Assembly: GCF_046119375.1 (NCBI RefSeq)
Contig: NW_027362767.1
Span: forward strand, 434,124,001-434,188,000
Direction of reading: 5' to 3'
Source of the DNA: Phyllobates terribilis
Lineage: Eukaryota
Length of the DNA stretch: 64,000 nt
Shown: positions 10,102 through 46,100 of the stretch, one piece after another
Position numbering within the stretch: position 1 is the first letter of the stretch
Layout of the letters: every line of letters starts with the position of its first letter
The notes under the pieces: generated by a model
The model's input: the letters and a program-made list of their open reading frames with translations, nothing else
Databases searched by the model: none
Told to the model about the DNA's origin: nothing
Position numbers and translations under genes: made by a program

Positions 10102-10106
10102 TAGTG

Positions 10107-15300: not shown

Positions 15301-15571
15301 TAACTCTTTCTCCAAGTCTACAGGTACGCCTCCTGCTCCGGTTTCCGCTGAAAACGAGTTTGAGGTAGAGAACATTCTGGCCACCAAAAGGGTAAGAGGA
15401 AAAACCTTTTTTCTAGTAGATTGGAAGGGGTTTGGTCCTGAGGAGAGAACGTGGGAGCCCCGGGAGAACATCCATGCCCCTCTCATCTTTGATAAATTTC
15501 TGTCTGACCTAAAGAAGGGGGGGCCTAAAGGGGGGGGGTACTGTAGCGTCGGCGTCCCTGCCTCCTGCTAG
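12290..15571 (+). pseudogene. pol (protease, RT, RNase H, integrase, chromodomain) in the -1 frame relative to gag, disrupted
   Basis: LDSGAAGN protease; [11 protein letters not shown] and YLDDIL RT; VDASS RNase H; H-H-C-C plus DFITDL/SDRG/VERIN integrase; GPRFIGP; chromodomain FEVENIL...LVDWKGFGPEERTWEP. Frameshift near 12530-12545; stops at 13505, 13541 and 15032. Confidence 0.95.
15527..15538 (+). other. Polypurine tract
   Basis: AAAGGGGGGGGG lies 3 nt before the 3' LTR start (TGTAGCG at 15542). Confidence 0.85.
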
Positions 15572-16789
15572 GCAGGGACGCTGTTCCCCTCACCTCTCCG
15601 CTCCGTGCCCGGCGTCTTCCTCCCGCTCTGCTGGCAGCGCGCGCTCCTTCCTGGCCATTGTGCTTAGGGCGCGCGCGCTCCCCCTCTCTTAAAGGGGCCG
15701 CGCGCGCCGTCCTAAGGAGTCCCCGGCCAATGGCCGGAGGATCTCTCCATATATAAGGCACCTCCTCCAAAATGGAGGTGCCCAAGCAATGTTGTAGCAT
15801 AGTTCATCACTCTGCTTCAGCCCTCAGGTCCCGTTACCAGTTACCTGCCAGTTTCCTGCCAGTTTCCTGTCTGATACCTGCCTGACTCATGTCTATCTGC
15901 TGTTATTCCTGCGGTCCGACAGTCTGCCTACCAGCCCTGCCAGTCTGTCTATGGATCCGTCTGCCCGCTCACCTGGGAGCGCTCACCTGCTACCTGCCTG
16001 CTAGCCTACCTGGAGGCTCTGCCGTCACGTGCTGTGACCACCTGCCTGTCCAGAGAATCTTACCCGCTCACCTGCTACCTGCCCGCTAGCCTACCTGGAG
16101 GCTCTGCCGTCACGTGCTGTGACCACCTGCCCGTCCAGAGACTGTTGCCCGCTCACCTGGGAGCGTCCACCTGTTACCTGCCTGTTTGCCTACCGGGAGG
16201 CTCTGCCGTCACTTGCTGTGACCACCCGCTTGTCCAGAGACTCTCGCCCGCTCACCTGGGAGCGTCCATCCGCTACCTGCCTGCTTGCCTACCTGGAGGC
16301 TCAGCCGTCACTTGCTGTGACCACCTGCTTGTCCAGAGACTCTCGCCCGCTCACCTGGGAGCGTCCACCCGCTACCTGCCTGCTTGCCTACCTGGAGGCT
16401 CAGCCGTCACTTGCTGTGACCACCCGCTTGTCCAGAGACTCTCGGCCGCTCACCTGGGAGCGTCCACCCGCTACCTGCCTGCTAGCCTACCTGGAGGCTT
16501 AGCCATCACTTGCCGTGACCACCCGCCTGTCAAGAGACTGACCCCGTCACTTGCCGTGACCTCCTGCCCTCTTACCCAGAGACTGTCCCCGTCACTGGCC
16601 GTGATCTCCTGCCCTCTTACCCAGAGACTGTCCCCGTCACTTGCCGTGATCTCCTGCCCTCTTACCCAGAGACTGTCCCCGTCACTAGCCGTGACTGCCT
16701 GCCCGCCTTCCCTGGGTGTCACCCGCTTCCTTACAAGGACTGCCCCTTTGTCTAGTTGCTCTGTGGTTCCACCTCCCAGACCCGTTACA
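15542..16789 (+). repeat. 3' LTR (1248 bp)
   Basis: Near-identical to the 5' LTR: about 20 substitutions by eye, plus a ~31-bp and a 14-bp indel. Ends CCGTTACA followed by the TSD. Confidence 0.96.
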
Positions 16790-16794
16790 TAGTG

Positions 16795-19700
16795 ACAGAC
16801 CCCGCACTACACATGGAGGACAGGTAGAGAGTGACAGACCCCACACTACACATGGAGGACAGGGACAGAGTGACAGACCCCACACTACACATGGAGGACA
16901 GCAGAGAGTGACAGACCCCACACTACACATGGAGGACAGGGAGAGAGTGGCAAACCCCACACTACACATGGAGGACAGGTAGAGAGTGACAGACCCCACA
17001 CTACACATGGAGGACAGGGAGAGAGAGACAGACCCCACACTACACATAGAGGACAGGTAGAGAGGGACAGACCCCGCACTACACATGGAGGACAGGTAGA
17101 GAGTGACAGACCCCACACTACACATGGAGGACAGGTAGAGAGGGACAGATCCCGCACTACACATGGAGGACAGGTAGTGAGTGAGAGACCCCACACTACA
17201 CATGGAGGACAGGTAGAGAGTGACAGACCCCACACTACACATAGAGGACAGGTAGAGAGTGATAGACCCCACACTACACATGGAGGACAGGGAGAGAGAG
17301 ATAGACCCCGCACTACACATGGAGGACAGGTAGAGAGTGACAGATCCCGCATTACACATGGAGGACAGAAAGAGAGTGACAGACCCCACACTGCACATGG
17401 AGGGCAGGTAGAGAGTGACAGACCCCACACTACACATTGAGGACAAGTATAGAGTGACAGACCCCACACTACACATGGAGGACAGGTAGAAAGTGACAGA
17501 CCCCACACTACACATGGAGGACAGGGAGAGAGTGACAGATCCCGCACTACACATGGAGGACAGGAAGAGAGTGACAGACTCCACACTACACATGGAGGAC
17601 AGGGAGAGAGTGACAGACCCCGCACTACACATGGAGGACAGGAAGAGAGTGACAGACCCCACACTACACATGGAGGACAGGAAGAGAGTGACAGACCCCG
17701 CACTACACATGGAGGACAGGGAGAAAGTGACAGACCCCACACTACACATGGAGGACAGGTAGAGAGTGACAGACCCCACACTACACATGAAGGACAGGTA
17801 GAGAGTGACAGACCCCGCACTACACATGGAGGACAGGTAGAGAGTGACAGACCCCGCACTACACATGGAGGACAGGTAGAGAGTGACAGACCCCGCACTA
17901 CACATGGAGGACAGGTAGAGAGTGACAGACCCCGCACTACACATGGAGGACAGGTAGAGAGTGACAGACCCCACACTACACATGGAGGACAGGTAGAGAG
18001 TGACAGACCCCACACTACACATGGAGGACAGGTAGAGAGTGACAGACCCCACACTGCACATGGAGGACAGGTAGAGAGTGACAGACCCCGCACTACACAT
18101 GGAGGACAGGTAGAGAGTGACAGACCCCGCACTACACATGGAGGACAGGTAGAGAGTGACAGACCCCGCACTACACATGGAAGACAGGTAGAGAGTGACA
18201 GACCCCACTCTACACATGGAGGACAGGTAGAGAGTGACAGACCCCACACTACACATGGAGGACAGGTAGAGAGTGACAGACCTCGCACTACACATGGAGG
18301 ACAGCAGAGAGTGACAGACCCCACACTACACATGGAGGACAGGTACAGAGTGACAGACCCCACTCTACACATGGAGGACAGGAAGAGAGTGACAGACCCC
18401 ACACTACACATGGAGGACAGGTAGAGAGTGACAGACCCCGCACTGCACATGAAGGACAGGTAGAGAGCGACAGACCCCACACTACACATGGAGGACAGGT
18501 AGAGAGCGACAGACCCCACACTACACATGGAGGACAGGGAGAGAGCGACAGATTACACACTACACATGGAGGACAGGTAGAGAGTGACAGACCCCACACT
18601 ACACATGGAGGACAGGGAGAGAGTGACAGACCCCGCACTACACATGGAGGACAGGTAGAGAGTGACAGACCCCACACTACACATGGAGGACAGGGAGAGA
18701 GTGACAGACCCCTCACTACACATGGAGGACAGGGAGAGAGTGACAGACCCCACACTACACATGGAGGACAGGTAGAGAGTGACAGACCCCACACTACACA
18801 TGGAGGACAGGGAGAGAGTGACAGACCCCGCACTACACATGGAGGACAGGTAGAGAGTGACAGACCCCACACTACACATGGAGGACAGGGAGAGAGTGAC
18901 AGACCCCTCACTACACATGGAGGACAGGGAGAGAGTGACAGACCCCACACTACACATGGAGGACAGGTAGAGAGTGACAGACCCCACACTACACATGGAG
19001 GACAGGGAGAGAGTGACAGACCCCACACTACACATGGAGGACAGGTAGAGAGTGACAGACCCCACACTGCACATGAAGGACAGGTAGAGAGTGACAGACC
19101 CCACACTACACATGGAGGACAGGTAGAGAGTGACAAACCCCGCACTACACATGGAAGACAGGTAGAGAGTGACAGACCCCACTCTACACATGGAGGACAG
19201 GGAGAGAGTGACAGACCCCACACTACACATGGAGGACAGGTAGAGAGTGACAGACCCCATACTACACATGGAGGACAGGGAGAGTGCGACAGATCCCGCA
19301 CTACACATGGAGGACAGGGTGAGAGCGACAGATTACACACTACACATGGAGGACAGGTAGAGAGTGACAGACCCCACACTACACATGGAGGACAGGGAGA
19401 GAGTGACAGACCCCGCACTACACATGGAGGACAGGTAGAGAGTGACAGACCCCGCACTACACATGGAGGACAGGGAGAGAGTGACAGACCCCACACTACA
19501 CATGGAGGACAGGGAGAGAGTGACAGACCCCGCACTACACATGGAGGACAGGTAGAGAGAGACAGACCCCGCAGTACACATGGAGGACAGGTAGAGAGCG
19601 ACAGACCCCGCACTACACATGGAGGACAGGTAGAGAGTGACAGACCCTACACTACACATGGAGGACAGGGAGAGAGTGACAGACCACACACTACACATGG

Positions 19701-22700
19701 AGGACAGGTAGAGAGCGACAGACCCCACACTACACATGGAGGACAGGGAGAGAGCGACAGATTACACACTACACATGGAGGACAGGTAGAGAGTGACAGA
19801 CCCCACACTACACATGGAGGACAGGGAGAGAGTGACAGACCCCGCACTACACATGGAGGACAGGTAGAGAGTGACAGACCCCACACTACACATGGAGGAC
19901 AGGGAGAGAGTGACAGACCCCACACTACACATGGAGGACAGGTAGAGAGTGACAGACCCCACACTACACATGGAGGACAGGTAGAGAGTGACAGACCCCA
20001 CACTACACATGGAGGACAGGTAGAGAGTGACAGACCCCACACTACACATGGAGGACAGGGAGAGAGTGACAGACCCCGCACTACACATGGAGGACAGGTA
20101 GAGAGTGACAGACCCCGCACTACACATGGAGGACAGGGAGAGAGTGACAGACCCCACACTACACATGGAGGACAGGTAGAGAGTGACAGACCCCACACTG
20201 CACATGGAGGACAGGTAGAGAGTGACAGACCCCACACTACACATGGAGGACAGGGAGAGAGTGACAGACCCCACACTACACATGGAGGACAGGTAGAGAG
20301 TGACAAACCCCGCACTACACATGGAAGACAGGTAGAGAGTGACAGACCCCACTCTGCACATGGAGGACAGGGAGAGAGTGACAGACCCCACACTACACAT
20401 GGAGGACAGGTAGAGAGTGACAGACCCCATACTACACATGGAGGACAGGGAGAGTGCGACAGATCCCGCACTACACATGGAGGACAGGGAGAGAGCGACA
20501 GATTACACACTACACATGGAGGACAGGTAGAGAGTGACAGACCCCACACTACACATGGAGGACAGGGAGAGAGTGACAGACCCCGCACTACACATGGAGG
20601 ACAGGTAGAGAGTGACAGACCCCGCACTACACATGGAGGACAGGGAGAGAGTGACAGACCCCACACTACACATGGAGGACAGGGAGAGAGTGACAGACCC
20701 CGCACTACACATGGAGGACAGGTAGAGAGTGACAGACCCCGCACTACACATGGAGGACAGGGAGAGAGTGACAGACCCCACACTACACATGGAGGACAGG
20801 TAGAGAGTGACAGACCCCACACTACACATGGAGGACAGGTAGAGAGTGACAGACCCCACACTACACATGGAGGACAGGGAGAGAGTGACAGACCCCGCAC
20901 TACACATGGAGGAGAGGTAGAGAGTGACAGACCCCGCACTACACATGGAGGACAGGGAGAGAGTGACAGACCCCACTCTACACATGGAGGACAGGTAGAG
21001 AGTGACAGACCCCACACTACACATGGAGGACAGGGAGAGAGCGACAGATCCCGCATTACACATGGAGGACAGAAAGAGAGTGACAGACCCCACACTGCAC
21101 ATGGAGGACAGGTAGAGAGTGACAGACCCCACACTACACATGGAGGACAGGTAGAGAGTGACAGTCCCCACACTACACATGGAGGACAGGGAGAGAGCGA
21201 CAGATCCCGCATTACACATGGAGGACAGAAAGAGAGTGACAGACCCCACACTGCACATGGAGGACAGGTAGAGAGTGACAGACCCCACACTACACATGGA
21301 GGACAGGTAGGGAGTGACAGACCCCGCACTACACATGGAGGACAGGTAGAGAGTGACAGACCCCACACTACACATGGAGGACAGGTAGAGAGCGACAGAC
21401 CCCACACTACACATGGAGGACAGGTAGAGAGTGACAGACCCCGCACTACACATGGAGGACAGGTAGAGAGTGACAGACCCCGCACTACACATGGAGGACA
21501 GGTAGAGAGCGACAGACCCCGCACTACACATGGAGGACAGGTAGAGAGCGACAGACCCCACAATACACATGGAGGACAGGTAGAGAGCGACAGATCCCAC
21601 ACTACACATGGAGGACAGGTAGAGAGCGACAGATCCCACACTACACATGGAGGACAGGTAGAGAGTGACAGACCCCGCACTACACATGGAGGACAGGTAG
21701 AGAGTGACAGACCCCGCACTACACATGGAGGACAGGTAGAGAGTGACAGATCCCACACTACACATGGAGGACAGGTAGAGAGCGACAGACCCCGCACTAC
21801 ACATGGAGGACAGGTAGAGAGCGACAGACCCCGCACTACACATGGAGGACAGGTAGAGAGTGACAGACCCCGCACTACACATGGAGGACAGGTAGAGAGC
21901 GACAGATCCCGCACTACACATGGAGGACAGGTAGAGAGCGACAGACCCCGCACTACACATGGAGGACAGGTAGAGAGCGACAGACCCCGCACTACACATG
22001 GAGGACAGGTAGAGAGCGACAGATCCCACACTACACATGGAGGACAGGTAGAGAGTGACAGACCCCGCACTACACATGGAGGACAGGTAGAGAGCGACAG
22101 ACCCCACACTACACATGGAGGACAGGTAGAGAGCGACAGATCCCACACTACACATGGAGGACAGGTAGAGAGCGACAGACCCCGCACTACACATGGAGGA
22201 CAGGTAGAGAGCGACAGACCCCACACTACACATGGAGGACAGGTAGAGAGCGACAGACCCCGCACTACACATGGAGGACAGGTAGAGAGCGACAGACCCC
22301 GCACTACACATGGAGGACAGGTAGAGAGCGACAGACCCCACACTACACATGGAGGACAGGTAGAGAGTGACAGACCCCGCACTACACATGGAGGACAGGT
22401 AGAGAGCGACAGACCCCGCACTACACATGGAGGACAGGTAGAGAGCGACAGACCCCACACTACACATGGAGGACAGGTAGAGAGCGACAGATCCCACACT
22501 ACACATGGAGGACAGGTAGAGAGTGACAGACCCCGCACTACACATGGAGGACAGGTAGAGAGCGACAGACCCCACACTACACATGGAGGACAGGTAGAGA
22601 GCGACAGATCCCACACTACACATGGAGGACAGGTAGAGAGTGACAGACCCCGCACTACACATGGAGGACAGGTAGAGAGCGACAGACCCCACACTACACA

Positions 22701-23841
22701 TGGAGGACAGGTAGAGAGCGACAGATCCCACACTACACATGGAGGACAGGTAGAGAGCGACAGATCCCACACTACACATGGAGGACAGGTAGAGAGCGAC
22801 AGACCCCGCACTACACATGGAGGACAGGTAGAGAGCGACAGACCCCACACTACACATGGAGGACAGGTAGAGAGTGACAGACCCCGCACTACACATGGAG
22901 GACAGGGAGAGAGTGACAGACCCCACACTACACATGGAGGACAGGTAGAGAGTGATAGACCCCACACTACACATGGAGGACAGGGAGAGAGTGACAGACC
23001 CCACACTACACATGGAGGACAGGTAGAGAGCGACAGATCCCACACTACACATGGAGGACAGGTAGAGAGCGACAGATACCACACTACACATGGAGGACAG
23101 GTAGAGAGCGACAGACCCCGCACTACACATGGAGGACAGGTAGAGAGCGACAGACCCCACACTACACATGGAGGACAGGTAGAGAGTGACAGACCCCGCA
23201 CTACACATGGAGGACAGGGAGAGAGTGACAGACCCCACACTACACATGGAGGACAGGTAGAGAGTGATAGACCCCACACTACACATGGAGGACAGGGAGA
23301 GAGTGACAGACCCCACACTACACATGGAGGACAGGTAGAGAGCGACAGATCCCACACTACACATGGAGGACAGGTAGAGAGTGACAGATCCCACACTACA
23401 CATGGAGGACAGGTAGAGAGCGACAGATCCCACACTACACATGGAGGACAGGGAGAGAGTGACAGACCCCACACTACACATGGAGGACAGGTAGAGAGCG
23501 ACAGATCCCACACTACACATGGAGGACAGGTAGAGAGTGACAGATCCCACACTACACATGGAGGACAGGTAGAGAGCGACAGACCCCACACTACACATGG
23601 AGGACAGGTAGAGAGCGACAGATCCCACACTACACATGGAGGACAGGTAGAGAGTGACAGATCCCACACTACACATGGAGGACAGGTAGAGAGCGACAGA
23701 TCCCACACTACACATGGAGGACAGGTAGAGAGTGACAGACCCTGCACTACACATGGAGGACAGGTAGAGAGCGACAGACCCCGCACTACACATGGAGGAC
23801 AGGGAGAGAGTGACAGACCCCACACTGTATATGGAGGACAG
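16795..23841. repeat. 39-bp tandem satellite, right part, ~180 units
   Basis: Same unit as 8010-10101. It resumes directly after the TSD. Confidence 0.98.
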
Positions 23842-24477: not shown

Positions 24478-24559
24478 TACGCATATTTTTTACCGATCCC
24501 TGCTCTGTTTCCTCCTGTGTCGCTCGGATATGACGTCATCATCCAGTAGACGCGGAGTG

Positions 24560-24566
24560 ATGGAGG
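24560..24566 (+). CDS. POLR1G: POLR1G coding exon 1 (ATG GAG G)
   Basis: ATG GAG G|GTAAGA is a strong phase-1 donor matching the phase-1 acceptor at 24746. CRE TGACGTCA at 24531-24538 lies upstream. Confidence 0.7.
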
Positions 24567-24745
24567 GTAAGATGGCTGCGCCCCTGATACATGTGACGGG
24601 AGCGTCAGTCACAGAGTGCAGGATCCGTGTGCTGAAGCCAATGATTGTAATGATGATTGATGCAGCAGCTGTGGTGTATGGACCTTTAGGCTGATGTTGG
24701 GGGTTGTAGTTGGGAAGTCGTGTGACTGACCATTGTTTCCCTCAG

Positions 24746-24866
24746 GTGGCGGCTTCCAGTGTCCGCAGGATTTTGTCCCGGTGGCGGAATGTGCCGGTTT
24801 GGTGACCTCTGACCCGGACACGGAGCTTTGGCTGATTAAGGCGCCCGCAGACTTTTCCCCGGAGAG
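24746..24866 (+). CDS. POLR1G: POLR1G coding exon 2 (RNA polymerase I subunit RPA34/PAF49/CD3EAP)
   Basis: TTTCCCTCAG acceptor. Encodes GGGFQCPQDF...DPDTELWLIKAPADFSPE, matching the recalled human FSCPPNF...GPDTELWLIQAPADFAPE. Donor AG|GTGAGA. Confidence 0.9.
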
Positions 24867-25156
24867 GTGAGAGCGGAGGCGACTCCTGAGGGGTGATGGG
24901 TCTGACTGCAGAAAGTAAGTGCCCCCCCCCCCACCCCCCTTTGACATGTGAGGCGGTTACAGGGACCGCTCCTTGTATCCACAGACTGTTATGGGGGCGC
25001 TATGGAGTCAAAGTGACCGTCACACCGGTGCGAGCGCGAGACGCTTCCCTCATCACAGCAAGAACCTGCAGTCACCACAAATAATTACAAGAGAAGGCCG
25101 AACACTCAGGACATTACTGAGCCGAGGAGGTTCACATTGGATCTTTATGAAATTTA

Positions 25157-27446
25157 CTAGATGGTGGCCCGATTCTAACGCATCGGGTATTCTAGAATAG
25201 GTATGCGGCCGACCGGGCGCAAGCAGCAGAGCGGTGTTTACGTTTGGCGCCAAAATCGCTGCTTGGTCGAGGCCGGCAACTGCGACTAATCAGCAAAGCG
25301 GTGTGAAAATTTGGCGCCTATATCGCAGATTGGTCACGGCCGGCGGTCGCGACTAATCAGAGCGGGGTTTAAATTAGGCGCCAATAATGCTGATTGGTCA
25401 CGGCCAGCGAACGCGACCCATCAGCAGAGCGGTATTTAAATTTGGCGCCAATAATGGTGATTGGTCACGGCTGCGACTAATCAGCAGAGCGGGGTTTAAA
25501 TTTGTCGCCAATAATGCTGGTTATTCGTAACCGCGACCAATCAGCGAAGCGGTGTTTAAATTTGGCGCCAATATCGCTGATTGGTCACGCCCGGCGGTCG
25601 CGACCAATCAGCAGAGCGTTGTTTAAATTTTGCGCCAAAATCGCTGATTGGTCGCGGTGGCCGGCCCCGACCAATCAGCAGAGCGGGGTTTAAATTTGCC
25701 GCCCATATCGATGATTGGTCGGGGCCGGTGGCCGCAACCAATCAGCGTCGTATTAGTGAGGACCGGAGAGCGGCGCTGCCTGTGCTGGTACTTCTGCTGC
25801 GAGCAGCTGGGAGATGAGCGGCTGCTCGCAGCAGAAGCATCCCGACCGGCGGCGCCGCTCCTCGGTCCTCCGTTCACACTTGCCGTCAAAAGATCATAGC
25901 GCTGTTTAAATTAGGCGCCAATCTCACTGCTTGGTCGCGGTCGGCTGGCATCCGCGACCAGTCAGCACAGCAATGTTTAAATGTGGCGGCAAGATCGGTG
26001 ATTGGTCGCGGCCGCTATTTAAATGTGGCGCCCAAGTCGGTGATTGGTCGCGGGCGGAGAGCGCGACCAATCAGCGAATCGTGTTGGTGAGGCCCGGGGA
26101 GTGGAATCGTATTGGTGAGGACCGGGGAGCGCCGCTCCCTGTGCGGCTACTTCCGCTGCGAGAAGCCGGGACATGAGCAGGCACTCGCAGCAGAAGTATC
26201 CCGACCCGCAGCGCCGCTCCCTGGTCCTCCCTTGACACCCTAGCCGCTGATGTCCCCACAGTATCCGCATGGTGTTACAAAGGTCCGGACATTTGTGTTA
26301 AAAATCGTTGATTGGTCACTGGCGCTGCCCGTGACCAATCACCGATTTGGCCGCCACATTTAAATATCGGCCGCGACCAATCAGTACAGCGGTGTTTAAA
26401 TGTGGAGCCAAGATCGGTGATTGGTCGCGGCCGATATTTAAATGTGGCGGCCAAATCGGTGATTGGTCACGGGCAGCGCCAGTGACCAATCAACGATTTT
26501 TAACACAAATGTCCGGACCTTTGTAACACCATGCGGATACTGTGGGGACATCAGCGGCTAGTGTGTCAAGGGAGGACCGGGGAGCGGCGCTGCGGGTCGG
26601 GATACTCCTGTTGCGAGCGCCCGCTCATGTCCCGGCTTCTCGCAGCGGAAGTATCCGCACAGGCAGCGCCGCTGACATCCATGCGCCTAGGGTGTGAAGG
26701 GAGGAGCGGGGAGTGGCGCTGACATCCAATTGGTCGCGGCCGCTATTTAAATGTGGCGCCAAAATCGGTGATTGGTCGCGCCCGGCGTCGGCGACCAATC
26801 AGCACAGCGGTGTTTAAATGTGGAGCCAAGATCGGTGATTGGTCGCGGCCGATATTTAAATGTGGCGCCCAAATCGGTGATTGGTCGCGGGCAGCGTCCG
26901 CGACCAATCAGCACAGAGGTGTTTAACTTTTGCGGTAAGATCAGTGATTGGTCGGGTCCGAAGACCGCGACCAATCATCGAATCGTCTTGGTGAGGACCG
27001 GGGAGCGGTGCTGCCTGTGCTGGTACTTCCGCTGCGAGAACCCTGGACATGAGCGGGCGCTCGCAGCAGAAGTATCCCGACCCGCAGCGCCGCTCCCCGG
27101 TCCTCCCTTCCGCATGGAGGTCAGCGGCGTCGGCGGTCCTTCCGCTGCTACCGGCCGGGAGATGAGCGCCTCGCGCCGCTCATCTACCGGCTGCATCTCC
27201 TTCCCGCAGATGGGTCCGGCGGTCGAGGTCCTTCTGCTGGTACCGGCCGGGAGATGAGCGCCTCGCGCCGGTCATCTCCTGGCTGCATCGCCGCTGAGCT
27301 CCGTCCCGCAGATGAGCCGATAACGGCCGCCATCTTTTTTCAGAAATCCCACGGCACTGATTGGTCCGGCAGCGGCCAATGAGCGACGCGGGATTTCCAG
27401 GACAGACAGACGGGATAAGACGATTATATATATATAGATAGATAGA
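25157..27446 (-). mobile_element. Non-autonomous Helitron-like element in POLR1G intron 2
   Basis: On the minus strand the 3' end is a hairpin CCCGAT-N8-ATCGGG followed 7 nt later by CTAG|T (25157-25160). The 5' end is A|TCTATATATATAAT type; its exact position is 27438-27446, ambiguous because of GATA repeats. No Rep/helicase ORF. Confidence 0.7.
26138..26663. repeat. Long inverted repeat: 143-bp perfect arms with a 34-bp spacer, extending imperfectly to ~245 bp
   Basis: 26241-26383 is the exact reverse complement of 26418-26560. Pairing continues with scattered mismatches out to 26138/26663. Confidence 0.95.
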
Positions 27447-28768
27447 TGCTGTGGGGTGCTTTGGCTGTTGGCTTTCCTGGTGTGTGTGTGTGTGTGTGTG
27501 GCGGGGGTTGGGCAGGTCGGGCCGACTCTGGGCCCTTGGCTCCCCGGGCATGTCGGGCCGACTCTGGGCCCCAGCCTTAACTCTGTAGGAAAGGCTCTGA
27601 GATTTTGAGGTGTCTGTGAACTTGTCAAGACTAAGACAGTTATCTCGAAATGCTTAGACCCGGTGTTTCATCTTTTGTATGTATTTTAATCTCTCCTTTG
27701 GATTTTTACGTACTATAATAAATGTGATGTTTTAATTTACTAATTTTTGTGGCTGCTGGCATTTTTTCTCCTTTTTCGTGCTTCATGCACCGCGCCCTAC
27801 TCTGAGAGAGTTTTCTACCCGATGAGCTGATGCTTGTTTTTCTTTCTACACTTATGTGGTTGGTTCTGAAGTTGAGTAAGAAGCTGTGCTGCAGTAGTCT
27901 CAGAAGAAATATCTGCACTCACTTTGCCTACCAAATCATAACTGTGTGCAATGCACAGACTGTCAGGATTCCCTTTGACCACCGGCACGAGGAATACGTC
28001 AATTGACCACATCTGTGATTTTCTTCCTTGACTGCGCTGGATTTTAGGTGCTTGTGTGTAATGGATGTGACTAAAAGTCATGAACCAAGTAATGAAAAAG
28101 TGGGTTCATACTGTATTTATCTGTACAGACATATAATGGGGGTTGTAGTGAACTTAGAGCAGTTTATTCATCAGTGACAAGTGTGGAGCAATACGCAGGT
28201 CTTGTATCTGCGTTACTGCCCTGCATAGATTATGTCCACGGCGCCTCCTGCAGGCTCAGACATGTATCCTAACACATGAGCACTGGATGAGGCCTCAATG
28301 TCGTCTACAGCAGCTTCATTTACCACTACAGCCTGTACTATACTCCAGAGCTGCACTCACTATTCTGCTAGTTTTCAGGTTGATCTACCAGTTAGGTCTG
28401 ATCCTCCCAGAGCCACCTTGTTTATGTCGCCTTGTTCTTTTCTCCGGGGGTCTCTTCCTGTATCACGGCCCGGGGTTCCTTTGCACATAGGCCCAGTTTG
28501 GTTCTTAGACTCCATTGTGCAGTCGTTTTGGCGTCACTATGCAGTGACTGTAGCTTTATACTGATATCTACAGAGCTGCTTCACATCCAATAAAAACTAA
28601 CTTTGGATTTCCAAAAAGGAAATACAAATCCAGAGCTCGATCAGAAGAAAGCCCTTAGAGTAACCCCCTGTGCCCTGCGGGTGGCGCTGTGTTATCACAG
28701 ATATATTGGCCGTGGGGATGTGAGTACTTTACTGTAGGGAGTAACGTCATCTCTCTTCTTGTCATCAG

Positions 28769-29171
28769 CTTTAACGCTCATCGTTTCCCGTTATCTGGCT
28801 ACAAGATGCAGAGGATCAAAGATGGCGGGGTGAAGAAGTATTACCACATGGTGTCCACGCCCGGCGCGACGCTGCCCCTCTGCGCCTTCCTGCAGCCTTC
28901 TGGGCTCCCGGAGGACGAGCTCCAGGCAGCTTCTACATTACAAGGTGTCATCACTCTGTCAGAGGCCCACGGAGACCACACAGCCCTGCGCAGTGTTCCT
29001 GACCGCCCGCCATTATCCCTCCCACAGGGACTGAAGCAGCGTTTTTGTCCATTTGGTGCTATTGCCCCTAATGTTAGTGAGGTGAGTAGAAAAGGCTCGC
29101 AGTTATCAGGAAGCCCCAAGAAAAAGAAAAAAGCAAAGAAACGGAAGCAGGAGGAAATGCTGGACGCCTGA
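28769..29171 (+). CDS. POLR1G: POLR1G coding exon 3 (terminal)
   Basis: TCTCTTCTTGTCATCAG acceptor; AG|C joins phase 2. Encodes SFNAHRFPLSG...LPQGLKQRFCPFGA...PKKKKKAKKRKQEEMLDA*, matching the recalled human FNGRHVPLSG...IPPGLRPRFCAFGG and a Lys-rich tail. Confidence 0.9.
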
Positions 29172-29225: not shown

Positions 29226-29231
29226 AATAAA
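29226..29231 (+). terminator. Polyadenylation signal of POLR1G
   Basis: AATAAA 54 nt after the stop codon. Further AATAAA copies occur near 29366 and 29421. Confidence 0.55.
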
Positions 29232-29493: not shown

Positions 29494-30060
29494 TCATACT
29501 GCGCCCCCCGTACCACAGGCAGATGGTGCTGCCTCTGATGATGTCACCGCTTGCTCAGGTGATGTCACTTCCTCTTCTTCGTCTGTTATTTCTGCGGAGA
29601 CAGAGTCGTCGTCTTTGGTCGCAGTGGAAGACTCAGTCGTGTTCATCGCTTCTTCTGTTGTTCCCGAGTCGGGTGCAGCGGGTGGAATTTTTCTGTACCC
29701 TCCGCTCCTCTCCATGGCCCTCCGAAGCCGTTCCCACCCCCCTTCCTCACCCTGCAGCGCTCTCTCATAGAGTCTAGTATGAGCCTTCAGTTCTCGAATT
29801 GATCGCTGAGTCTCTCGTGTCCGACGTAGCAAGGCCAGAGAGCGCAGCGAGACCTCCAGGAGCTGCGGTGCCGCCTGCCTGCACACTTTGGGTTCAGGAG
29901 GAGCCGGATCTGTGTCTTTGGGAGGGTCGGAGGCCGAACTTGAAGGAGGAGGAACACGTGGTGCAATCTTAGGATAAGAGCGCAGGATGGGCAGGTAGGA
30001 GGAAGGGGAAGCTCTTTTACGATGGCGTCGGACAGGAGGCTGGAGAAGCACAAGGCGAGG
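29494..30060 (-). CDS. CIPC-family (CLOCK-interacting pacemaker-like) terminal coding exon
   Basis: Acceptor TTTCTCCTTCTAG at 30061-30062, phase 0. Encodes PRLVLLQPPV...SYLPILRSYPKIAP...LLEVSLRSLALLRRTRETQRSIRELKAHTRLY...GWERLRRAM, matching CIPC NYLPILNSYTKIAP and its C-terminal coiled coil. Symbol withheld because orthology versus paralogy is unresolved. Confidence 0.88.
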   Translation of the reverse strand, partial: PRLVLLQPPVRRHRKRASPSSYLPILRSYPKIAPRVPPPSSSASDPPKDTDPAPPEPKVCRQAAPQLLEVSLRSLALLRRTRETQRSIRELKAHTRLYERALQGEEGGWERLRRAMERSGGYRKIPPAAPDSGTTEEAMNTTESSTATKDDDSVSAEITDEEEEVTSPEQAVTSSEAAPSACGTGGAV

Positions 30061-30680
30061 CTAGAAGGAGAAATAGAGAAATGTTACCGGACTTAACCTG
30101 AGGAGCAGATTCACCACCAGGGCGGCAGCAGTGGGGCAACTAGATGATCGGCGTTCCTCAGTGTGATGTGGGCAGAGAATGGGGTTGGACTACAAGAAAC
30201 GTAGTGTCAGAATGGAGCTGTCAGATTCGTGCATGGAAGCTGCAGCTGATGAAAGAAGACCCCTGAAGGGGTTACAGGGGAGAGGGGCTTATAGCAGAGA
30301 CTGCAGGGAGGTGGCACCGCTGGTCTGGGCAGCACTTCAGTATAGGATTGGGCCGCGGCAGTCAGGCTTATCCGCATGTCATAATAGAAACTACTACGTG
30401 GCGTCGGCTCCATCACACAGACGCCTCCCCGACCTCGCAGACTTGTCGATGGTCTGTTGGGTCCTGGGGAGGCGTCTTAATAGTAATGTGCACTGAGCCT
30501 TATCTGGACGGGAAGTTCTTGGGGTTCTCCAGGATTAGAAGGAAGAATCGTTCTCCAGCCATGCGCCTGAATAGAAACTAAGTAGTAGTTCCAGACACGA
30601 CCATATCTGCAGGAGATAGGTGCTTGTACTGGAGAGAATCCTCCCTTTCATCCTGGAGAACCTCCTTTTAAAGAGTAACT

Positions 30681-30712
<32 letters not shown>

Positions 30713-31180
30713 ATTAATTATTGATCGGCCTTTGTAAAGTTATGAATCTTTGTAATATACGCCCTTTTTTTTTTTTTTTTCTTCGTCCTCTCACGTGTCG
30801 TTATAACCTCCTAGTTCATGCTCCTTTAGAAGCTGCTTTGAACTGCTCCTCCAGCAAGAATCCCTGGTCAACCTTCCCCTATCTGAGCACGGGGGAGGGG
30901 GGCATAGAAGCTGTAAATAGTGTTTGACTACGAGTCTTGCTGGAGCAGCAGCTCAATGTGGCTTCTAAAGGAACACAAACTAGCAGGTTATAACAGCAGT
31001 GTCCACACGTCACGTGGGAGAGAAAGAAGTAAAATAAGGTAATAGTGAATACTACAAAGATTTGTAACTTTATAAAGGACGATCAATGATTAATACGACG
31101 TTTAGATAATTGTAGAATGAACCGTTTTATCAAACACATTTGTTTCTTATTTTTTTTGTTGCTTCTGGTCTTTTTCTCAC

Positions 31181-31320
31181 CTGTTTGAGGATGACATTCT
31201 GTAGGATATATATAGGAGTATACGCCGCCTGTGTCTGCCGTGTGTCCGGGGTGGCGGCCGTCACGCTGGCGCTCGTTGATGGCGGCGATTCCTCTGAGCT
31301 GAGGCTTTCCGAGCTGCTGT
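31181..31320 (-). CDS. CIPC-family internal coding exon (140 nt)
   Basis: CTCTCTTCACAG acceptor and CAG|GTGAGA donor. Encodes (D)SSSESLSSEE...YTPIYILQNVILKQ, like CIPC DGSSECLSS...SPMVVMKNVLVKQ. Phases 1 and 0 fit both neighbouring exons. Confidence 0.88.
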
Positions 31321-32201
31321 CTGTGAAGAGAGCGTCAGTCAGTCCCTGGCGAGGCAGCGGACCGGCTCCATCCTCCCGACACAACTCTGTACAGAGGCGG
31401 GACATTGTGTGGGCGGAGCATTGTCTGCGCCCCAGGGTGGGTGGGGTCACCTGTAGATTGGCAGCGGGCTCTGATGATGACCCTCCCCCCCGTGACAGCA
31501 GAGATTTCGTCTGCAGGGATCCTGCCACCGCCAGATTTATCAGAAAGGTCGTTGTTGCCCATGGCAACCAATTACTGCGCAGCTTTCATTTTACCACAGC
31601 ATTAAGAAATGAAAGCTGCGCTCCGGTTGCTATGGGTAACAAAGGCAGATCATAAATGACCGGAAAATTCCATGAATTGGTAACTCTCACAAGGGGAGAA
31701 TACGCAGACGCTGAGAGCAGACAGTTTATGGATGACATTCCTGTCGGGGGGGTCAGGTAATGTGTGCTGTGCGGACCCTGAAGACGGTGGTAACCTGACT
31801 GATCATCTGGCCATAGCAACCAATCAGAAGACAGCTTACATTGTCCCAGAGCAGTAGATGAGGTGAGAGCTGTGCTCTGATTGGTTGCTGTGCAGGTGGA
31901 TTAGTCCATGTTTGCATCAGAGGTGTCTGAGGGACCAGTGTCGTCCACAAGGTCCTGTCAGGGAAGTTAATGGCTCTACAGCTGTATTCACATTAGGTTT
32001 GTTCTCCACGGCCAAAAAGTAGCCGGCACGGAGCCATTGGGCACAATGAGGTAACGTCTGCGGATGTGGCCGTCGTTGGTTGGGGGGATTCATGTGCGTT
32101 AACACCGAACTGAAAATGTAAACACAGCCGTGCACAGAGGAGATACTGAGGGTTGTAGTACGCAGGAGCGGAGGAACATGTAGTACATAAATGGCGCTTA
32201 C

Positions 32202-32328
32202 CGGAGTACCCAGAGTCCTTTTCGGTCTCGCTCGCTGACTGCTCCTTTGTGACCGGTGTCATCTCGGCCTCTGCACTTTTTTCTTCCCCGGGATTGGGAG
32301 GTCCGGTGTCTGGCAGAGGAGACTTCAT
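32202..32328 (-). CDS. CIPC-family first coding exon
   Basis: Acceptor TCTCTTCTCCGCTCCCCATCTGCAG|A then ATG at 32328. Encodes MKSPLPD...SETEKDSGYS G|GTAAGC, matching CIPC ESDKDSGFSD. An alternative in-frame ATG lies at 32406. Confidence 0.8.
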
Positions 32329-32600: not shown

Positions 32601-34314
32601 GTGTGTATAATACAGAGTATAGTGCGGTATATAGCGACAACGCTCTCGTGTATAGTGCGGTATATAGGGCAGCGCTCCCGTGTATAGTGCGGTATATAGG
32701 GCAGCACTCTCATGTATAGTGCGGTATATAGCGGCAGCGCTCTTGTGTATAGTGCGGAATATAGCGGCAGCGCTCTCGTGTATAGTGCGGTATATAGGGC
32801 AGCGCTCCCGTGTATAGTGCGGTATATAGCGGCAGCGCTCCCGTGTATAGTGCGGTATATAGCGGCAGCGCTCTCGTGTATACTGCGGTATATAGGGCAG
32901 CGCTCTCGTGTATAGTGCGGTATATAGGGCAGCACTCTCATGTATAGTGCGGTATATAGCGGCAGCGCTCTTGTGTATAGTGTGGAATATAGCGGCAGCG
33001 CTCTCGTGTATAGTGCGGTATATAGGGCAGCGCTCCCGTGTATAGTGCGGTATATAGCGGCAGCGCTCCCGTGTATAGTGCGGTATATAGGGCAGCGCTC
33101 CCGTGTATAGTGCGGTATATAGCGGCAGCGCTCTCGAATATACTGCGGTATATAGGGCAGCGCTCTCGTGTATAGTGCGGTATATAGCAGCAGCGTTCTC
33201 GTGTATACTGCGGTATATAGGGCAGCACTCTCATGTATAGTGCGGTATATAGCGGCAGCTCTCTCGTGTATAGTGCGGTATATAGCGGCAGCGCTCTCGT
33301 GTATACTGCGGAATATAGGGCAGCGCTCTCGTGTATAGTGCGGTATATAGCAGCAGCGTTCTCGTGTATACTGCGGTATATAGGGCAGCACTCTCATGTA
33401 TAGTGCGGTACATAGCGGCAGCGCTCTCGTGTATAGTGCGGTATATAGAGGCAGCGCTCTCGTGTATAGTGCGGTATATAGCGGCAGCGCTCTCGTGTAT
33501 ACTGCGGTATATAGGGCAGCGCTCTCGTGTATAGTGCGGTATATAGCAGCAGCGTTCTCGTGTATACTGCGGTATATAGGGCAGCACTCTCATGTATAGT
33601 GCGGTACATAGCGGCAGCGCTCTCGTGTATAGTGCGGTATATAGCGGCAGCGCTCTTGTGTATAGTGCGGTATATAGCGGCAGCGCTCTTGTGTATAGTG
33701 CGGTATATAGCGGCAGCGCTCTCGTGTATAGTGCGGTATATAGCGGCAGCGCTCTCGTGTATAGTGCGGTATATAGCGGCAGCGCTCTCGTGTATAGTGC
33801 GGTATATAGCGGCAGCGTTCTCGTGTATAGTGCGGTATATAGCGGCAGCGCTCTCGTGTATAGTGCGGTATATAGCGGCAGCGCTCTCGTGTATAGTGCG
33901 GTATATAGCGGCAGCGCTCTAGTGTATAGTGTGGTATATAGGGCAGCACTCTTGTGTATAGCACAGTGTATAGCGGCAGCGTTCTCGTGTATAGTGCGGT
34001 ATATAGGGCAGTGCTCTCGTGTATAGTGCGGTATATAGCAGCAGCGTTCTCGTGTATACTGCGGTATATAGGGCAGCACTCTCATGTATAGTGCGGTATA
34101 TAGGGCAGCACTCTCATGTATAGTGCGGTATATAGGGCAGCGCTCTTGTGTATAGTGCGGTATATAGCGGTAGCGCTCTCGTGTATAGTGCGGTATATAG
34201 CGGCAGCACTCTCATGTATAGTGCGGTATATAGCGGCAGCGCTCTAGTGTATAGTGTGGTATATAGGGCAGCGCTCTTGTGTATAGTGCGGTGAATATAC
34301 ACCCCATACTGTAC

Positions 34315-34364
<50 letters not shown>

Positions 34365-35150
34365 TACATACACACACACACGCTGCCCTATATACCGCAC
34401 TATACACGAGAGTGCTGCCCTATATACCGCACTATACACGAGAGTGCTGCCCTATATACCGCACTATACACGAGAGCGCTGCCGCTATATACCGCACTAT
34501 ACACGAGAGCGCTGCCGCTATATACCGCACTATATACGAGAGCGCTGCCGCTATATACCGCACTATACACGAGAGTGCTGCCCTATATACCGCACTATAC
34601 ACGAGAGCGCTGCCGCTATATACCGCACTATACATGAGAGCGCTGCCCTATATACCGCACTATACACGAGAGCGCTGCCGCTATATGCCGCACTATACAT
34701 GAGAGCGCTGCCGCTATATACCGCACTATACATGAGAGCGCTGCCCTATATACCGCACTATACACGAGAGCGCTGCCCTATATACCGCACTATACACGAG
34801 AGCGCTGCCGCTATATACCGCACTATACACGAGAGCGCTGCTGCTATATACCGCACTATACACGAGAGCGCTGCTGCTATATACCGCACTATACATGAGA
34901 GCGCTGCCCTATATACCGCACTATACACGAGAGCGCTGCCCTATATACCGCACTATACACGAGAGCGCTGCCGCTATATACCGCACTATACACGAGAGCG
35001 CTGCCGCTATATACCGCACTATACACGAGAGCGCTGCTGCTATATACCGGTATATAGCGGCAGAGCTCTCGTGTATAGTGCGGTATATAGGGCAGCGTTC
35101 GTGTGTGTGCATATATATATATAATGTACAGTATGGGGTGAATATTCACC
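32601..35150. repeat. 31/33-bp minisatellite (GTGTATAGTGCGGTATATAGCGGCAGCGCTCTC) with an internal inverted segment and (TA)n
   Basis: Forward units to ~34292, (TA)n at ~34316-34358, reverse-complement units 34381-35048, forward units again 35049-35100. Confidence 0.95.
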
Positions 35151-41465: not shown

Positions 41466-42986
<1,521 letters not shown>

Positions 42987-43100: not shown

Positions 43101-46100
43101 TAGTGTGTGAACCCGAACTCTATAGTTCAGGGTTCATACGGTATTGAACTCCGAACACTGACTTTTCCCCGGAAGTCCGTTTTAATGTTCGGGTTCGGTG
43201 CCTAATAAAGTTTGTTGAAAGGCTGCAGGTCAGCCAATCTACAAGCTTTTAGGCTGGAGCCATCACAGCCATGCCAAGTTTTGGCATGGCTGTGATTGGC
43301 TGGCGCACCACGTGACCCGGCCTGTATAAATGCCATATCACGGGTGTTGCCGCCATTCTTCTTTATTTAACGTAGGGGCAGGACGCCACTAAAGTGAAGG
43401 ACAGTGTTAGATTCTGTGTGTACTCTGCTTCCGTCTCTGTGGGAGTACTGTGCCAAAAAGCCTCTGTGTACGTGCCCTGCAGACATCTCTGTAGAAGTAC
43501 TCTGCCAAAGGGCCTCTGTGTGTACGGTGTACGCGACACATCTCTGTGGGAGTACTGTGCCCAAAAGCCTCTGTGTGTGTGCTCTGCACACGTCTCTGTA
43601 GAAGTACTCCACCAAAGGGCCTGTGTGTGTACTGTGACGGCAACACGTCTGTGTGGGAGTACTTTGCCAAAAAGCCTCTTTCTCTTCTCTACTGTGCGTT
43701 TTTTTGGGGGTGGAAAAAATGAGGAGAGCATCAAATAAGGGATATGGCTGTGGCGCTGCTGCTGCTGGTGGTGGTGTAGATGCCGCAGGGAGAGGATGTG
43801 GTCGATCTGTGCCTTAGATGCGCCCAAATGAAACACCGTCCTCTGCTGCACGCAGGCGACAGGATGTTCTGTGTCATGTTCTGGGGCCGAGTACCGCTGC
43901 ACAAATTGGGAGGCCAGAACATGTTGAAGCGGTGTTAGATTGGATGGCTGAGAGTGGCTCCAGTTCCTTTGCTTGATCTTCCACCCGGTCCACTGCAGAA
44001 AGTGCACAATTGGCATCTTACGTCCATGGTCATCCGGCTTCCACCTCACCCACATGCAGATCAGGCAAGCAGTCTGAGCCCCAAGTCATGCAGCAGTCTC
44101 TTCTGCTTTTTAATGACTCCGCTAGCTGTGGTTCCGTGGGCCATCCACCTGGCCCTGCCCCACAAGTGGAAGAGATTGAGTGCACTGATGCCCAACCACT
44201 TGTTCAGTTGGAGGATGATGAGTACGTGGGAGGGTTAATGTACACGGTCAGCGGCCGACCCCTGGCCAGCACGTCAGCTGCTACTGCCCACAGCACCGAT
44301 GGACTGAGCACACCAGAGCCAGCTCAAAGGAGCTCCCTGGTGTGGCATTTCTTCAGGCAATGTGCTGACGACAAGAGATGGGTGGTTTGCACGCTGTGGC
44401 ATCAGAGCCTGAAGCGAGGCATAAATGTTCTGAACCTGAGCACCACCTGCATGATGAGGCATCTGAAATCAAAGCACGAGCTGCACTGGAATACACACCT
44501 GAAAAACCAGGAAAGATCTGAGGCTCCTCCTGCTCCCTCTTCTGCTGTGGTCTCGGCAGCATCGACAGCACCACCACCATCAGTGTCACCGAGCATTTCC
44601 ACACCGTCCCATGTGTTGTGGTAGCCCCTTCCAAGGAGAGCTAATTTGGGTTGAGATACAAACGATCTCCAATATTTCTGCCGTTATTGGTTCAAATTAA
44701 ATAAAATAAATACGATGCATCGGATCTAAGAAAATAACACACAGCCGGTGTCTGAGTGTACAATTCTTGTCTGCCCTCAGATCCCAAGCAACAAGTATTT
44801 TATTACACCCCAAGAAGAAAGGGGAATGGCTACGTAGGTAGTATATTACCTACAAAAGATAGTATTTTAATTGGGAAATAACAAGGTAATAAATCATGGA
44901 GACTCCTGAATTCCTTTCTAACTAGCTCTGTACAGTTTATTTCTCTAACAAAGAAAGCTTAACACAGACAGCTCTATATCAGAGACAATGCCCTGTGTTA
45001 TTGCTTTTATGAATAACACTTATAAAGCTAATGCTAAAATACAAAATTATCAAAGATATATGAATTGTCTAAATAATCAAAGCAAAGTATAAATATTTAC
45101 CATAACAAGTGGAAGCGTTCAGTTGTGAAAAAAGAGAAAGTACCCCCTCTACCCACCCACGAGCCTGGGTCCTGAATGACAGCATTTCACAATTCCTGGC
45201 CTTTGAAATGCTGCCATTCCGGCTGGTGGAGATGGACAGTTTTATAAAACTGATGGCGGTGGCTGTCCCGCAGTACATGGTTCCCAGACGCCACTACTTT
45301 TCCCTGCACACACGTTACGGAGAAAATCAGGTGTGCACTGCGTAACTCCATCTGTGGCAAGGTCCATCTAACCACCAATGCGTGGACCAGTAAGCACGGA
45401 CAGAGACATTATATCTCCCTAATTGCCCACTGGGTAAATGTAGTGGTGGCTGGGCCTGAGGTAGAAGGCGTTCTGGCACACGTCCTACCACCACCGAGGA
45501 TTGCTGGACGTTTCTCTGTCCATGTTGCCTCCTCATCCGGTCAGCATAACACCTGCACCACCAACTTCAGCACAGCCAGGGGGAAACGACGGGTAGTTCT
45601 GAACCTCATCTGTTTGGGGGACAAATCCCACACTGTACAGGAGCAGTGGACGGGGATCAAACAGCAGACAGATGAGTGGTTGGTGCCGCTGAACCTCAAG
45701 GCCGGCCTGGTGGTGTGTGATAACGGGAGAAATCTCGTAGCATCTCTAGGCCTGGCAGGTTTGAAGCACATCCCTTGCCTGGTGCATGTGCTGAATTTGG
45801 TGGTGCAGAGCTTCCATAAAAATTGTGAGATGTGAGAGCTGCTGCAGAACGAGCGGGCCGTCTGTGTGCACTTTCGACGTTCTCACCCTGCTGCTCTCCT
45901 GTCTGCGCTGCATCGTCACCGCTTTATATACGACGTACCCACAAGGCGGAACTCCACCCTGCATATGCTGGAGACACTGTGCAAGCAGCAGCAGGCAATA
46001 GTGGAGTTTCAGCTGCAGCACACATGGCTGAGTCGCTTTGTGGAACAACCCCACTTCACCACCAATGAATGCGCCTCCATAGGGAATGTGTGTGCCATGT

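Follow-up and report, generated by a model that had tools for sequence, protein, structure and literature searches.

The locus described here raises the question of whether vertebrates have one gene of the CIPC (CLOCK-interacting pacemaker) family or two, and which of them frogs carry beside POLR1G. The literature describes CIPC as a single clock repressor, specific to vertebrates. We examined a stretch of 64,000 nucleotides (nt) from the frog Phyllobates terribilis (contig NW_027362767.1, positions 434,124,001–434,188,000 of the forward strand; hereafter, the window), in which a CIPC-family gene lies tail-to-tail with POLR1G. An initial annotation, made from the sequence without database searches, had proposed that this gene is the 19q13-side paralog of CIPC and a possible second repressor of CLOCK-BMAL1, absent from the mammalian locus. 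Our best explanation, which we hold with good confidence, is that a second vertebrate CIPC-family gene exists in the POLR1G/ERCC1/CLPTM1 neighborhood and is represented in this frog by a CIPC-like gene.

An intact, spliced, and constrained gene

The coding region was predicted to consist of three exons with consistent splice phases and to encode about 277 amino acids (aa), and this structure was borne out. The three coding exons (127+140+567 nt, 278 codons) are separated by introns in phases 1 and 0, all junctions are of the GT...AG type with polypyrimidine tracts, and the exon translations match a protein that is already in public databases, P0001 (277 aa, named “uncharacterized protein [Phyllobates terribilis]”), which served for the whole-protein analyses. 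Residues 1–42, 44–89, and 90–277 of P0001 are the translations of exons 1, 2, and 3, respectively, and codon 43 is split by the first intron into G and AC. The tblastn blocks from four frog orthologs stop at position 32203, at the exon 1 boundary. An alternative acceptor for exon 3 at position 30039, giving a protein of 270 aa, was ruled out because the acceptor at position 30060 adds the residues PRLVLLQ, which are kept in all orthologs. A CTGCAG acceptor located 1 nt 5′ of the ATG suggests a putative upstream noncoding 5′ exon, which may lie before or beyond a block of 33-bp satellite repeats.

Every CIPC hallmark quoted in the initial annotation was found in P0001: EKDSGYSD at residues 36–43, PIYILQNVILKQ at residues 78–89, YLPILRSYPKIAP at residues 111–123, and the C-terminal helix at residues 155–207. 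Exon 1, which encodes residues 1–42 and the first base of codon 43, carries at its 3′ end EKDSGYS of the motif EKDSG[FY]SD. Exon 2 encodes a Ser/acid-rich stretch and the PIYILQNVILKQ block (31181–31216), and exon 3 encodes the basic cluster RRHRKR (30013–30030), YLPILRSYPKIAP (29959–29997), a helical segment (29707–29865), and an acidic disordered tail. Exon 3 alone matched the Pfam family CiPC (PF15800) with 35.5 bits against a gathering cutoff of 27 (E = 1.3e−8), and the precomputed annotations of P0001 and of every ortholog include PF15800. When exon 1 and exon 2 were each scanned alone, neither matched a Pfam family, because they are too short.

The predicted junctions are used in mRNA, as shown by a transcript from a related frog, rather than from P. 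terribilis itself. The Logan contig L010 (SRR27929899, another frog, 961 bp) contains an uninterrupted open reading frame (ORF) for a whole ortholog of 263 aa, and it aligns to the window in precisely three blocks, the breaks between which are the predicted junctions, indicating that it represents a spliced mRNA. More than 25 frog species, ranging from Ascaphus, Bombina, Discoglossus, and Xenopus to neobatrachians, have orthologs of 226–339 aa, and approximately 50 positions are invariant across 14 aligned frog orthologs. The ratio of nonsynonymous to synonymous substitution rates (dN/dS), counted exon by exon and pooled over the three exons, was 0.25 in comparison with the dendrobatoid Anomaloglossus (dS, 0.31; dN, 0.08; 273 codons; Fisher p = 7e−11); the comparison with Xenopus laevis was saturated. 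The window gene is thus an intact, spliced gene of three exons that is under selective constraint and is transcribed in a related frog.

Two clades of the CIPC family and the position of the frog gene

The initial annotation had called for a search for a separate CIPC ortholog in the same genome. Such an ortholog was found: P0275 (“CLOCK-interacting pacemaker [Phyllobates terribilis]”, 338 aa) is encoded at approximately 8.9 Mb of scaffold JBJBSG010000007.1, so the window gene, located at approximately 434.15 Mb of the same scaffold and thus approximately 425 Mb away, is not a translocated sole CIPC. Both CIPC-family genes were also found in Spea, Pseudophryne, Hyperolius, Xenopus, Dendropsophus, Ascaphus, and Bombina, and in X. 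laevis, the short gene and CIPC are on the same chromosomes. The product of the window gene shares 25–31% identity with true CIPCs.

An exhaustive HMMER search with a broad profile over 1.84 billion representatives recovered 361 family members, the best 150 of which were classified. The only matches to a profile built from the frog sequences were proteins named “CIPC” or “CIPC-like” from sharks, ray-finned fishes, caecilians, and reptiles; ordinary frog CIPCs were not among them. Together, these matches make up a single clade (“CIPC-like”; clade X) that agrees with the species tree, with turtles, crocodilians, birds (including the ratites ostrich and rhea), tuatara, squamates, caecilians, and a newt among the tetrapods, and with the coelacanth, bichir, gar, and teleosts outside them; the elephant shark joins at only 80/79. 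The other clade (true CIPC by name; clade Y) comprises proteins of mammals, birds, Alligator, newt, axolotl, coelacanth, gar, bichir, teleosts, and frogs, including Xenopus tropicalis NP_001120621. One cluster listed two partial human CIPC entries, which were left out of the analysis. Both clades are represented, by one gene each, in Alligator, newt, coelacanth, gar, bichir, and sturgeon. Among the nonmammalian tetrapod groups sampled, only frogs are missing from clade X, and the short form is found only in frogs, so that the taxa are complementary: clade X lacks frogs, and the short frog clade lacks caecilians and newts. Names in NCBI and UniProt cross the two clades, in that many clade-X proteins (in squamates, caecilians, tuatara, many teleosts, Pristis, and Callorhinchus) are called “CLOCK-interacting pacemaker” and, conversely, some true-CIPC genes (sturgeon, eel, and one X. 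laevis homeolog) are called “-like”.

The gene structure is common to the whole family. Both intron positions, in phase 1 after DSG[FY]S and in phase 0 after ..KQ, are shared by the window gene, the Phyllobates CIPC, and the caecilian, turtle, bird, and elephant-shark genes, and the phase-0 donor of exon 2 (after ...LKQ) is common to true CIPC and clade-X genes. When the frog proteins were left out of the hidden Markov models (HMMs) of clades X and Y, each of the nine short frog proteins scored 98–122 bits on the X HMM versus 47–74 bits on the Y HMM, a preference for X of 26–65 bits. As a control, the true CIPCs of frogs scored 204–252 bits on the Y HMM versus 148–201 bits on the X HMM.

The assignment to the 19q13 side, proposed initially from the neighboring POLR1G, agrees with the gene order in other vertebrates. 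POLR1G adjoins the short gene tail-to-tail in three frogs (Phyllobates, Anomaloglossus, and X. laevis), and ERCC1 or CLPTM1 is found at the clade-X genes of amniotes: in the turtle Mauremys, the clade-X gene is 5 kb upstream of ERCC1 (Rad10 and HHH), and in the bird Calonectris borealis, the gene lies between CLPTM1 and ERCC1 (L006, OZ077843.1, 10001–11755). ERCC1, POLR1G, and CLPTM1 are neighbors at human 19q13.32, and human CIPC (KIAA1737) is at 14q24.3, with PGF and a TMEM63-type gene as its 14q24 neighbors. On the clade-Y side, protein clusters included fused models that carry the names of PGF and a TMEM63-type gene, and some models join the true-CIPC gene of gar and bichir to “PLGF factor”. 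No neighboring gene was found within 10 kb at the caecilian and catshark loci, and the gar clade-X gene, nested in a Ras/Roc gene, was uninformative for synteny. Human 14q24 and 19q13 are paralogous regions, and we infer that clades X and Y may have separated in the genome duplications of early vertebrates, which would make the two genes ohnologs.

The proposed absence of the gene from mammals holds for the proteins that were classified. In the best 150 of the 361 representatives, 105 were unlabeled, and 64 of these were X-type, none with a mammal as the nearest labeled relative; the four mammal-like unlabeled representatives were all Y-type, and no mammalian clade-X member was found, with no mammalian genome DNA having been searched. 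We infer that mammals lost the clade-X gene.

In a maximum likelihood tree (60 proteins, 372 columns, LG+C20 with posterior mean site frequencies [PMSF], with hagfish and lampreys as the outgroup), the window protein fell outside the true-CIPC clade (100/99), as the initial reading implied for a phylogeny of CIPC and CIPC-like proteins. The short frog proteins formed their own clade (100/100), the stem of which has a length of 2.39 changes per column. In approximately unbiased (AU) tests, grouping the short frog proteins with frog CIPC, as expected for a frog-specific duplication, was rejected (difference in log-likelihood [ΔlnL], 36.2; p-AU = 0.001), and grouping them with the clade-X proteins of newt and caecilians, as expected for orthologs, was not rejected (ΔlnL, 3.3; p-AU = 0.27).

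Several observations weigh against our best explanation. The branch that has the frog proteins and clade X on one side is unstarred, at 76/93, and the grouping of the short frog proteins with all of clade Y was likewise not rejected (ΔlnL, 1.6; p-AU = 0.36), so that the tree alone does not separate X from Y as the place of the frog branch. Long-branch effects are also present, and earlier trees paired the frogs with the fast-evolving Calonectris protein. The frog proteins lack the motifs KQRRFxNTVEIL and SKRxC, which are present in every other clade-X protein, and the frog helix matches a known CIPC structure weakly (E, 0.03–0.05). ERCC1 exons taken from the turtle and bird loci had no match in the window, so that the frog and amniote loci share a region without having an identical neighbor. 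The elephant-shark gene (L012, Callorhinchus milii WEZY01001733.1) is flanked by a PDGF/VEGF-domain gene (1–389) and an SH3-domain gene (14357–16709) and not by ERCC1 or POLR1G, so that the assignment of the cartilaginous-fish gene to clade X is tentative. Finally, the absence from mammals depends on the classified representatives described above.

The pairing of the frogs with Calonectris was rejected as long-branch attraction, since the bird protein joins the archosaur part of clade X when ratites are added. The motifs KQRRFxNTVEIL and SKRxCxEE are missing from the frogs because of deletions inside exon 3, and they are typical features of a group, not a criterion of descent. Based on the profile scores, the neighboring genes, the taxon distribution, and the gene structure, we conclude that the window gene is very probably the frog ortholog of the clade-X (19q13-side) CIPC paralog.

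Remodeling of the frog protein and alternative interpretations

The frog protein retains the family motifs EKDSG[FY]SD, PxYI..N..LKQP, and YLPIL.SYP.IAP, and the residues D38, S39, G40, S42, D43, Y111–L115, Y118, and I121–P123 are invariant across the short frog proteins, clade X, and true CIPC. The family-invariant extended motif EKDSG[FY]SDxSS (P0001 residues 36–46; window positions 32202–32223 and 31310–31320) resembles an extended DSG-type beta-TrCP phosphodegron, a likeness that would point to control of turnover by phosphorylation throughout the CIPC family. The AlphaFold prediction, based on the frog alignment, was of a disordered protein except for helices at residues 155–167, 171–191, and 197–207 (predicted local distance difference test [pLDDT] score, 82–94). 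Residues 155–204 of this region matched chain C of PDB entry 5vji in the expected segment, with E = 0.049 for the single sequence and E = 0.031 for the frog profile. Chain C of 5vji and 5vjx is “CLOCK-interacting pacemaker”, a CIPC fragment crystallized with CLOCK exon 19. The frog helix also keeps the family-invariant residues L156, L166, T173, Q174, L180, A190, and L201.

The window gene resembles CIPC in its Pfam family, in its three coding exons with identical intron positions, in the motifs EKDSG[FY]SD and YLPIL..Y..IAP, and in a C-terminal helix homologous to the mouse CIPC helix that enters a coiled coil with CLOCK exon 19 (5vji/5vjx). In contrast to CIPC, it is a separate, shorter gene at a POLR1G-side locus, its product lies outside the 100/99 clade, and the frog protein has neither the KxRRFxNT motif nor the region aligned with K186/K187. 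With clade X, it shares the chromosomal neighborhood (ERCC1/CLPTM1 in amniotes and POLR1G in frogs), the best profile match, and the signatures TP[IV]YI..N[VI].LKQP and TQR.I.EL..H.RL. Compared with the other clade-X proteins (approximately 370–510 aa), the frog protein is shorter (260–295 aa across frogs), having lost approximately 30 residues after KQP and approximately 120 central residues (approximately 150 in total); it has IAPR in place of IAPHP, has gained RRHRKR, and is on a very long stem. The QKK at positions 186/187 of the 399-aa mammalian CIPC aligns with SKRxC of clade X, and this segment is deleted in all of the short frog proteins. Lys186 and Lys187 of human CIPC are reported to be essential for its nuclear localization (PMC12285964). 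The RRHRKR cluster (residues 100–105), located upstream of YLPIL, is nearly invariant in frogs and may replace the segment equivalent to the nuclear localization signal (NLS) in nuclear import. In neognath birds, a fast-evolving CIPC-like copy of approximately 240 aa (P0108 and P0223, “uncharacterized”) has lost the YLPIL block and kept the helix; the frogs and the neognath birds trimmed different parts of the protein, indicating independent reductions.

If the frog protein acts as CIPC does, its C-terminal helix (residues 155–207) would bind the exon-19 region of either CLOCK or NPAS2 and thereby damp the output of CLOCK:BMAL1. We propose this CIPC-like mechanism as the likeliest one, from the sequence and the predicted fold, and we judge its chances to be slightly below even. 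In the frog lineage, the protein was remodeled within exon 3, with approximately 150 residues shed amid a rapid accumulation of substitutions; since then, it has been conserved across frogs, Ascaphus and Bombina as well as neobatrachians. A clade-X ortholog that no longer acts on CLOCK, having instead some other role (for example, cytoplasmic or in the ERK pathway, as reported for CIPC) or serving as a decoy, is a possible, if rather unlikely, alternative. The burst of 2.39 changes per column on the stem and the loss of approximately 150 residues, including the region aligned with K186/K187, are consistent with such a change of role, as are the weak match of the helix to the crystallized CIPC fragment and the lack of a frog counterpart for the 10 residues of that fragment located N-terminal to the aligned helix. 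However, the helix is the best-conserved and the sole confidently folded part of the protein and retains the family-invariant positions, and the invariant basic cluster could stand in for the NLS.

Descent from a third ancient CIPC-family paralog, kept by frogs, which lost clade X, and lost in other vertebrates, is improbable. It would fit the emergence of the frog clade from an unresolved basal polytomy on its long stem, the lack of the KQRRFxNTVEIL and SKRxC motifs that are common to X and Y, and the AU test in which the grouping of the frogs with clade Y was not rejected. However, it demands two reciprocal and exactly complementary losses, the frog gene is in the same POLR1G/ERCC1 region as the amniote clade-X genes, all of the frog proteins favor the X profile, and their placement beside the newt and caecilian clade-X proteins was not rejected. 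Furthermore, the missing motifs are explained by the deletions in exon 3, and birds independently reduced the same gene. Less probable still is a frog-specific duplicate of frog CIPC, a segmental copy or retrocopy that landed by POLR1G and diverged fast: although the two genes share a scaffold in Phyllobates and share chromosomes in X. laevis, and the long branch is like that of young neofunctionalized copies, the AU test rejected this origin, both family introns are kept at their ancestral positions, which excludes a retrocopy, the two genes are approximately 425 Mb apart, and the profile preference is for clade X and not for CIPC.

Surroundings of the gene and significance of a second CIPC

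The identification of the neighboring gene as POLR1G in the initial annotation was supported by a match to PF08208 (RNA_polI_A34, E = 1.6e−5) in its last-exon ORF (28689–29171), which is followed by AATAAA at position 29226, and by the annotated product of 186 aa, which also carries PF08208. The features of the locus are listed in Table 1. In the interval between the two stop codons, AATAAA occurs three times on the plus strand (29226, 29366, and 29421), whereas the minus strand has neither AATAAA nor ATTAAA in the 1.2 kb next to the stop codon of the CIPC-family gene, indicating that the 3′ untranslated regions (UTRs) are very short or overlapping. The 3′ UTR of the CIPC-family gene either uses a noncanonical signal or runs antisense into the last exon of POLR1G. 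Human POLR1G (ASE-1, CD3EAP) at 19q13.32 is convergent with ERCC1, whose 3′ end is within a few hundred bases of it. The frog POLR1G likewise has a close convergent neighbor, with stop codons 322 bp apart, whereas its partner in frogs is the CIPC-family gene and not ERCC1. At the turtle and bird loci, the CIPC-like gene is followed closely by ERCC1, which is transcribed from the same strand.

Table 1. Positions of the CIPC-family gene and adjoining features in the window
Feature	Position	Strand	Details
POLR1G (RNA polymerase I subunit A34.5/PAF49 homolog)	24530–29171	+	Convergent with the CIPC-family gene; coordinates of the annotated product converted from L009
Gap between POLR1G and CIPC-family stop codons	29172–29493		322 bp; genes tail-to-tail
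Coding exon 3	29494–30060	−	188 codons plus TGA (29496–29494); residues 90–277
Intron 2	30061–31180	−	1120 nt; phase 0; GT...AG; contains an inverted-repeat element like a miniature inverted-repeat transposable element (MITE) at 30712–31095
Coding exon 2	31181–31320	−	2 nt plus 46 codons; finishes codon 43 (D); residues 44–89
Intron 1	31321–32201	−	881 nt; phase 1; GT...AG
Coding exon 1	32202–32328	−	ATG at 32328–32326; 42 codons plus 1 nt; donor GT at 32201–32200
33-bp satellite (unit GTATAGTGCGGTATATAGCGGCAGCGCTCTCGT)	32617–35049		Arrays 32617–34292 and 34381–35049, in opposite orientations

The 33-bp satellite forms a large palindromic block that begins 289 bp upstream of the ATG of the CIPC-family gene, thereby bounding the region available for a possible promoter or 5′ exon. 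The element in intron 2 consists of nested inverted repeats with arms of 72 nt (78%) and 63 nt (84% complementarity); flanked by poly-T runs, it looks like a MITE or a foldback-like element. The E-box CACGTG occurs 12 times in the window, with no enrichment, and the two copies in intron 2 (30792 and 31011) are mirror copies within the inverted repeat and are thus no evidence of clock control. Elsewhere, satellite blocks occupy positions 1–7137, 8013–10104, and 16791–23841, with a 41-bp C-rich unit spanning approximately 6.7 kb. A 39-bp satellite unit occurs in 54 copies in one array and 181 copies in another, flanking a gag-pol retroelement that has ORFs from approximately 11.2 to 15.6 kb and is bounded by arrays of a 99-bp repeat (10497–11087 and 15980–16567). 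The ORFs at 41793–42818, 43977–47063, and 61212–61782 resemble remnants of Tc1/mariner-type and hAT-type transposases. No further host gene was recognized between 35 and 64 kb of the window, upstream of the CIPC-family gene.

The gene itself is already present in databases under several names: “uncharacterized protein” in this genome, si:ch211-132b12.7 in zebrafish, and “CLOCK-interacting pacemaker-like” in other species. In the literature, we found no paper that treats clade X as a distinct CIPC paralog; the papers matching “CIPC-like” mostly concerned fungal CipC or cnidarians, and si:ch211-132b12.7 was found only in lists of differentially expressed genes. The practical weight of the finding is moderate, as public annotation includes the gene as a prediction and CIPC is peripheral in the clock. 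A review (PMC12285964), which cites Zhao et al. 2007, reports that mouse CIPC knockouts show only a reduced Per1 peak, with an unchanged locomotor period. The annotation needs correction, since many clade-X genes are named as CIPC and the frog genes are “uncharacterized”.

As a rather doubtful extension of the clade-X interpretation, offered as speculation, ancestral jawed vertebrates may have had two repressors binding CLOCK exon 19, of which the POLR1G/ERCC1-side copy would have survived in fishes, amphibians, reptiles, and birds, with a nonredundant role in their clocks, and been lost in mammals; frogs and, independently, neognath birds would have cut it down to the phospho-motif and the CLOCK-binding helix, with altered localization or regulation. 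If a second member of the family has been kept in nonmammalian vertebrates for hundreds of millions of years, the clock models of Xenopus, zebrafish, chicken relatives, and reptiles may miss a component of the negative limb. The trimmed frog protein would constitute a natural deletion series for the CIPC family, and, if the proposal is true, this frog “mini-CIPC” could reveal the parts of CIPC that are enough to repress the clock.

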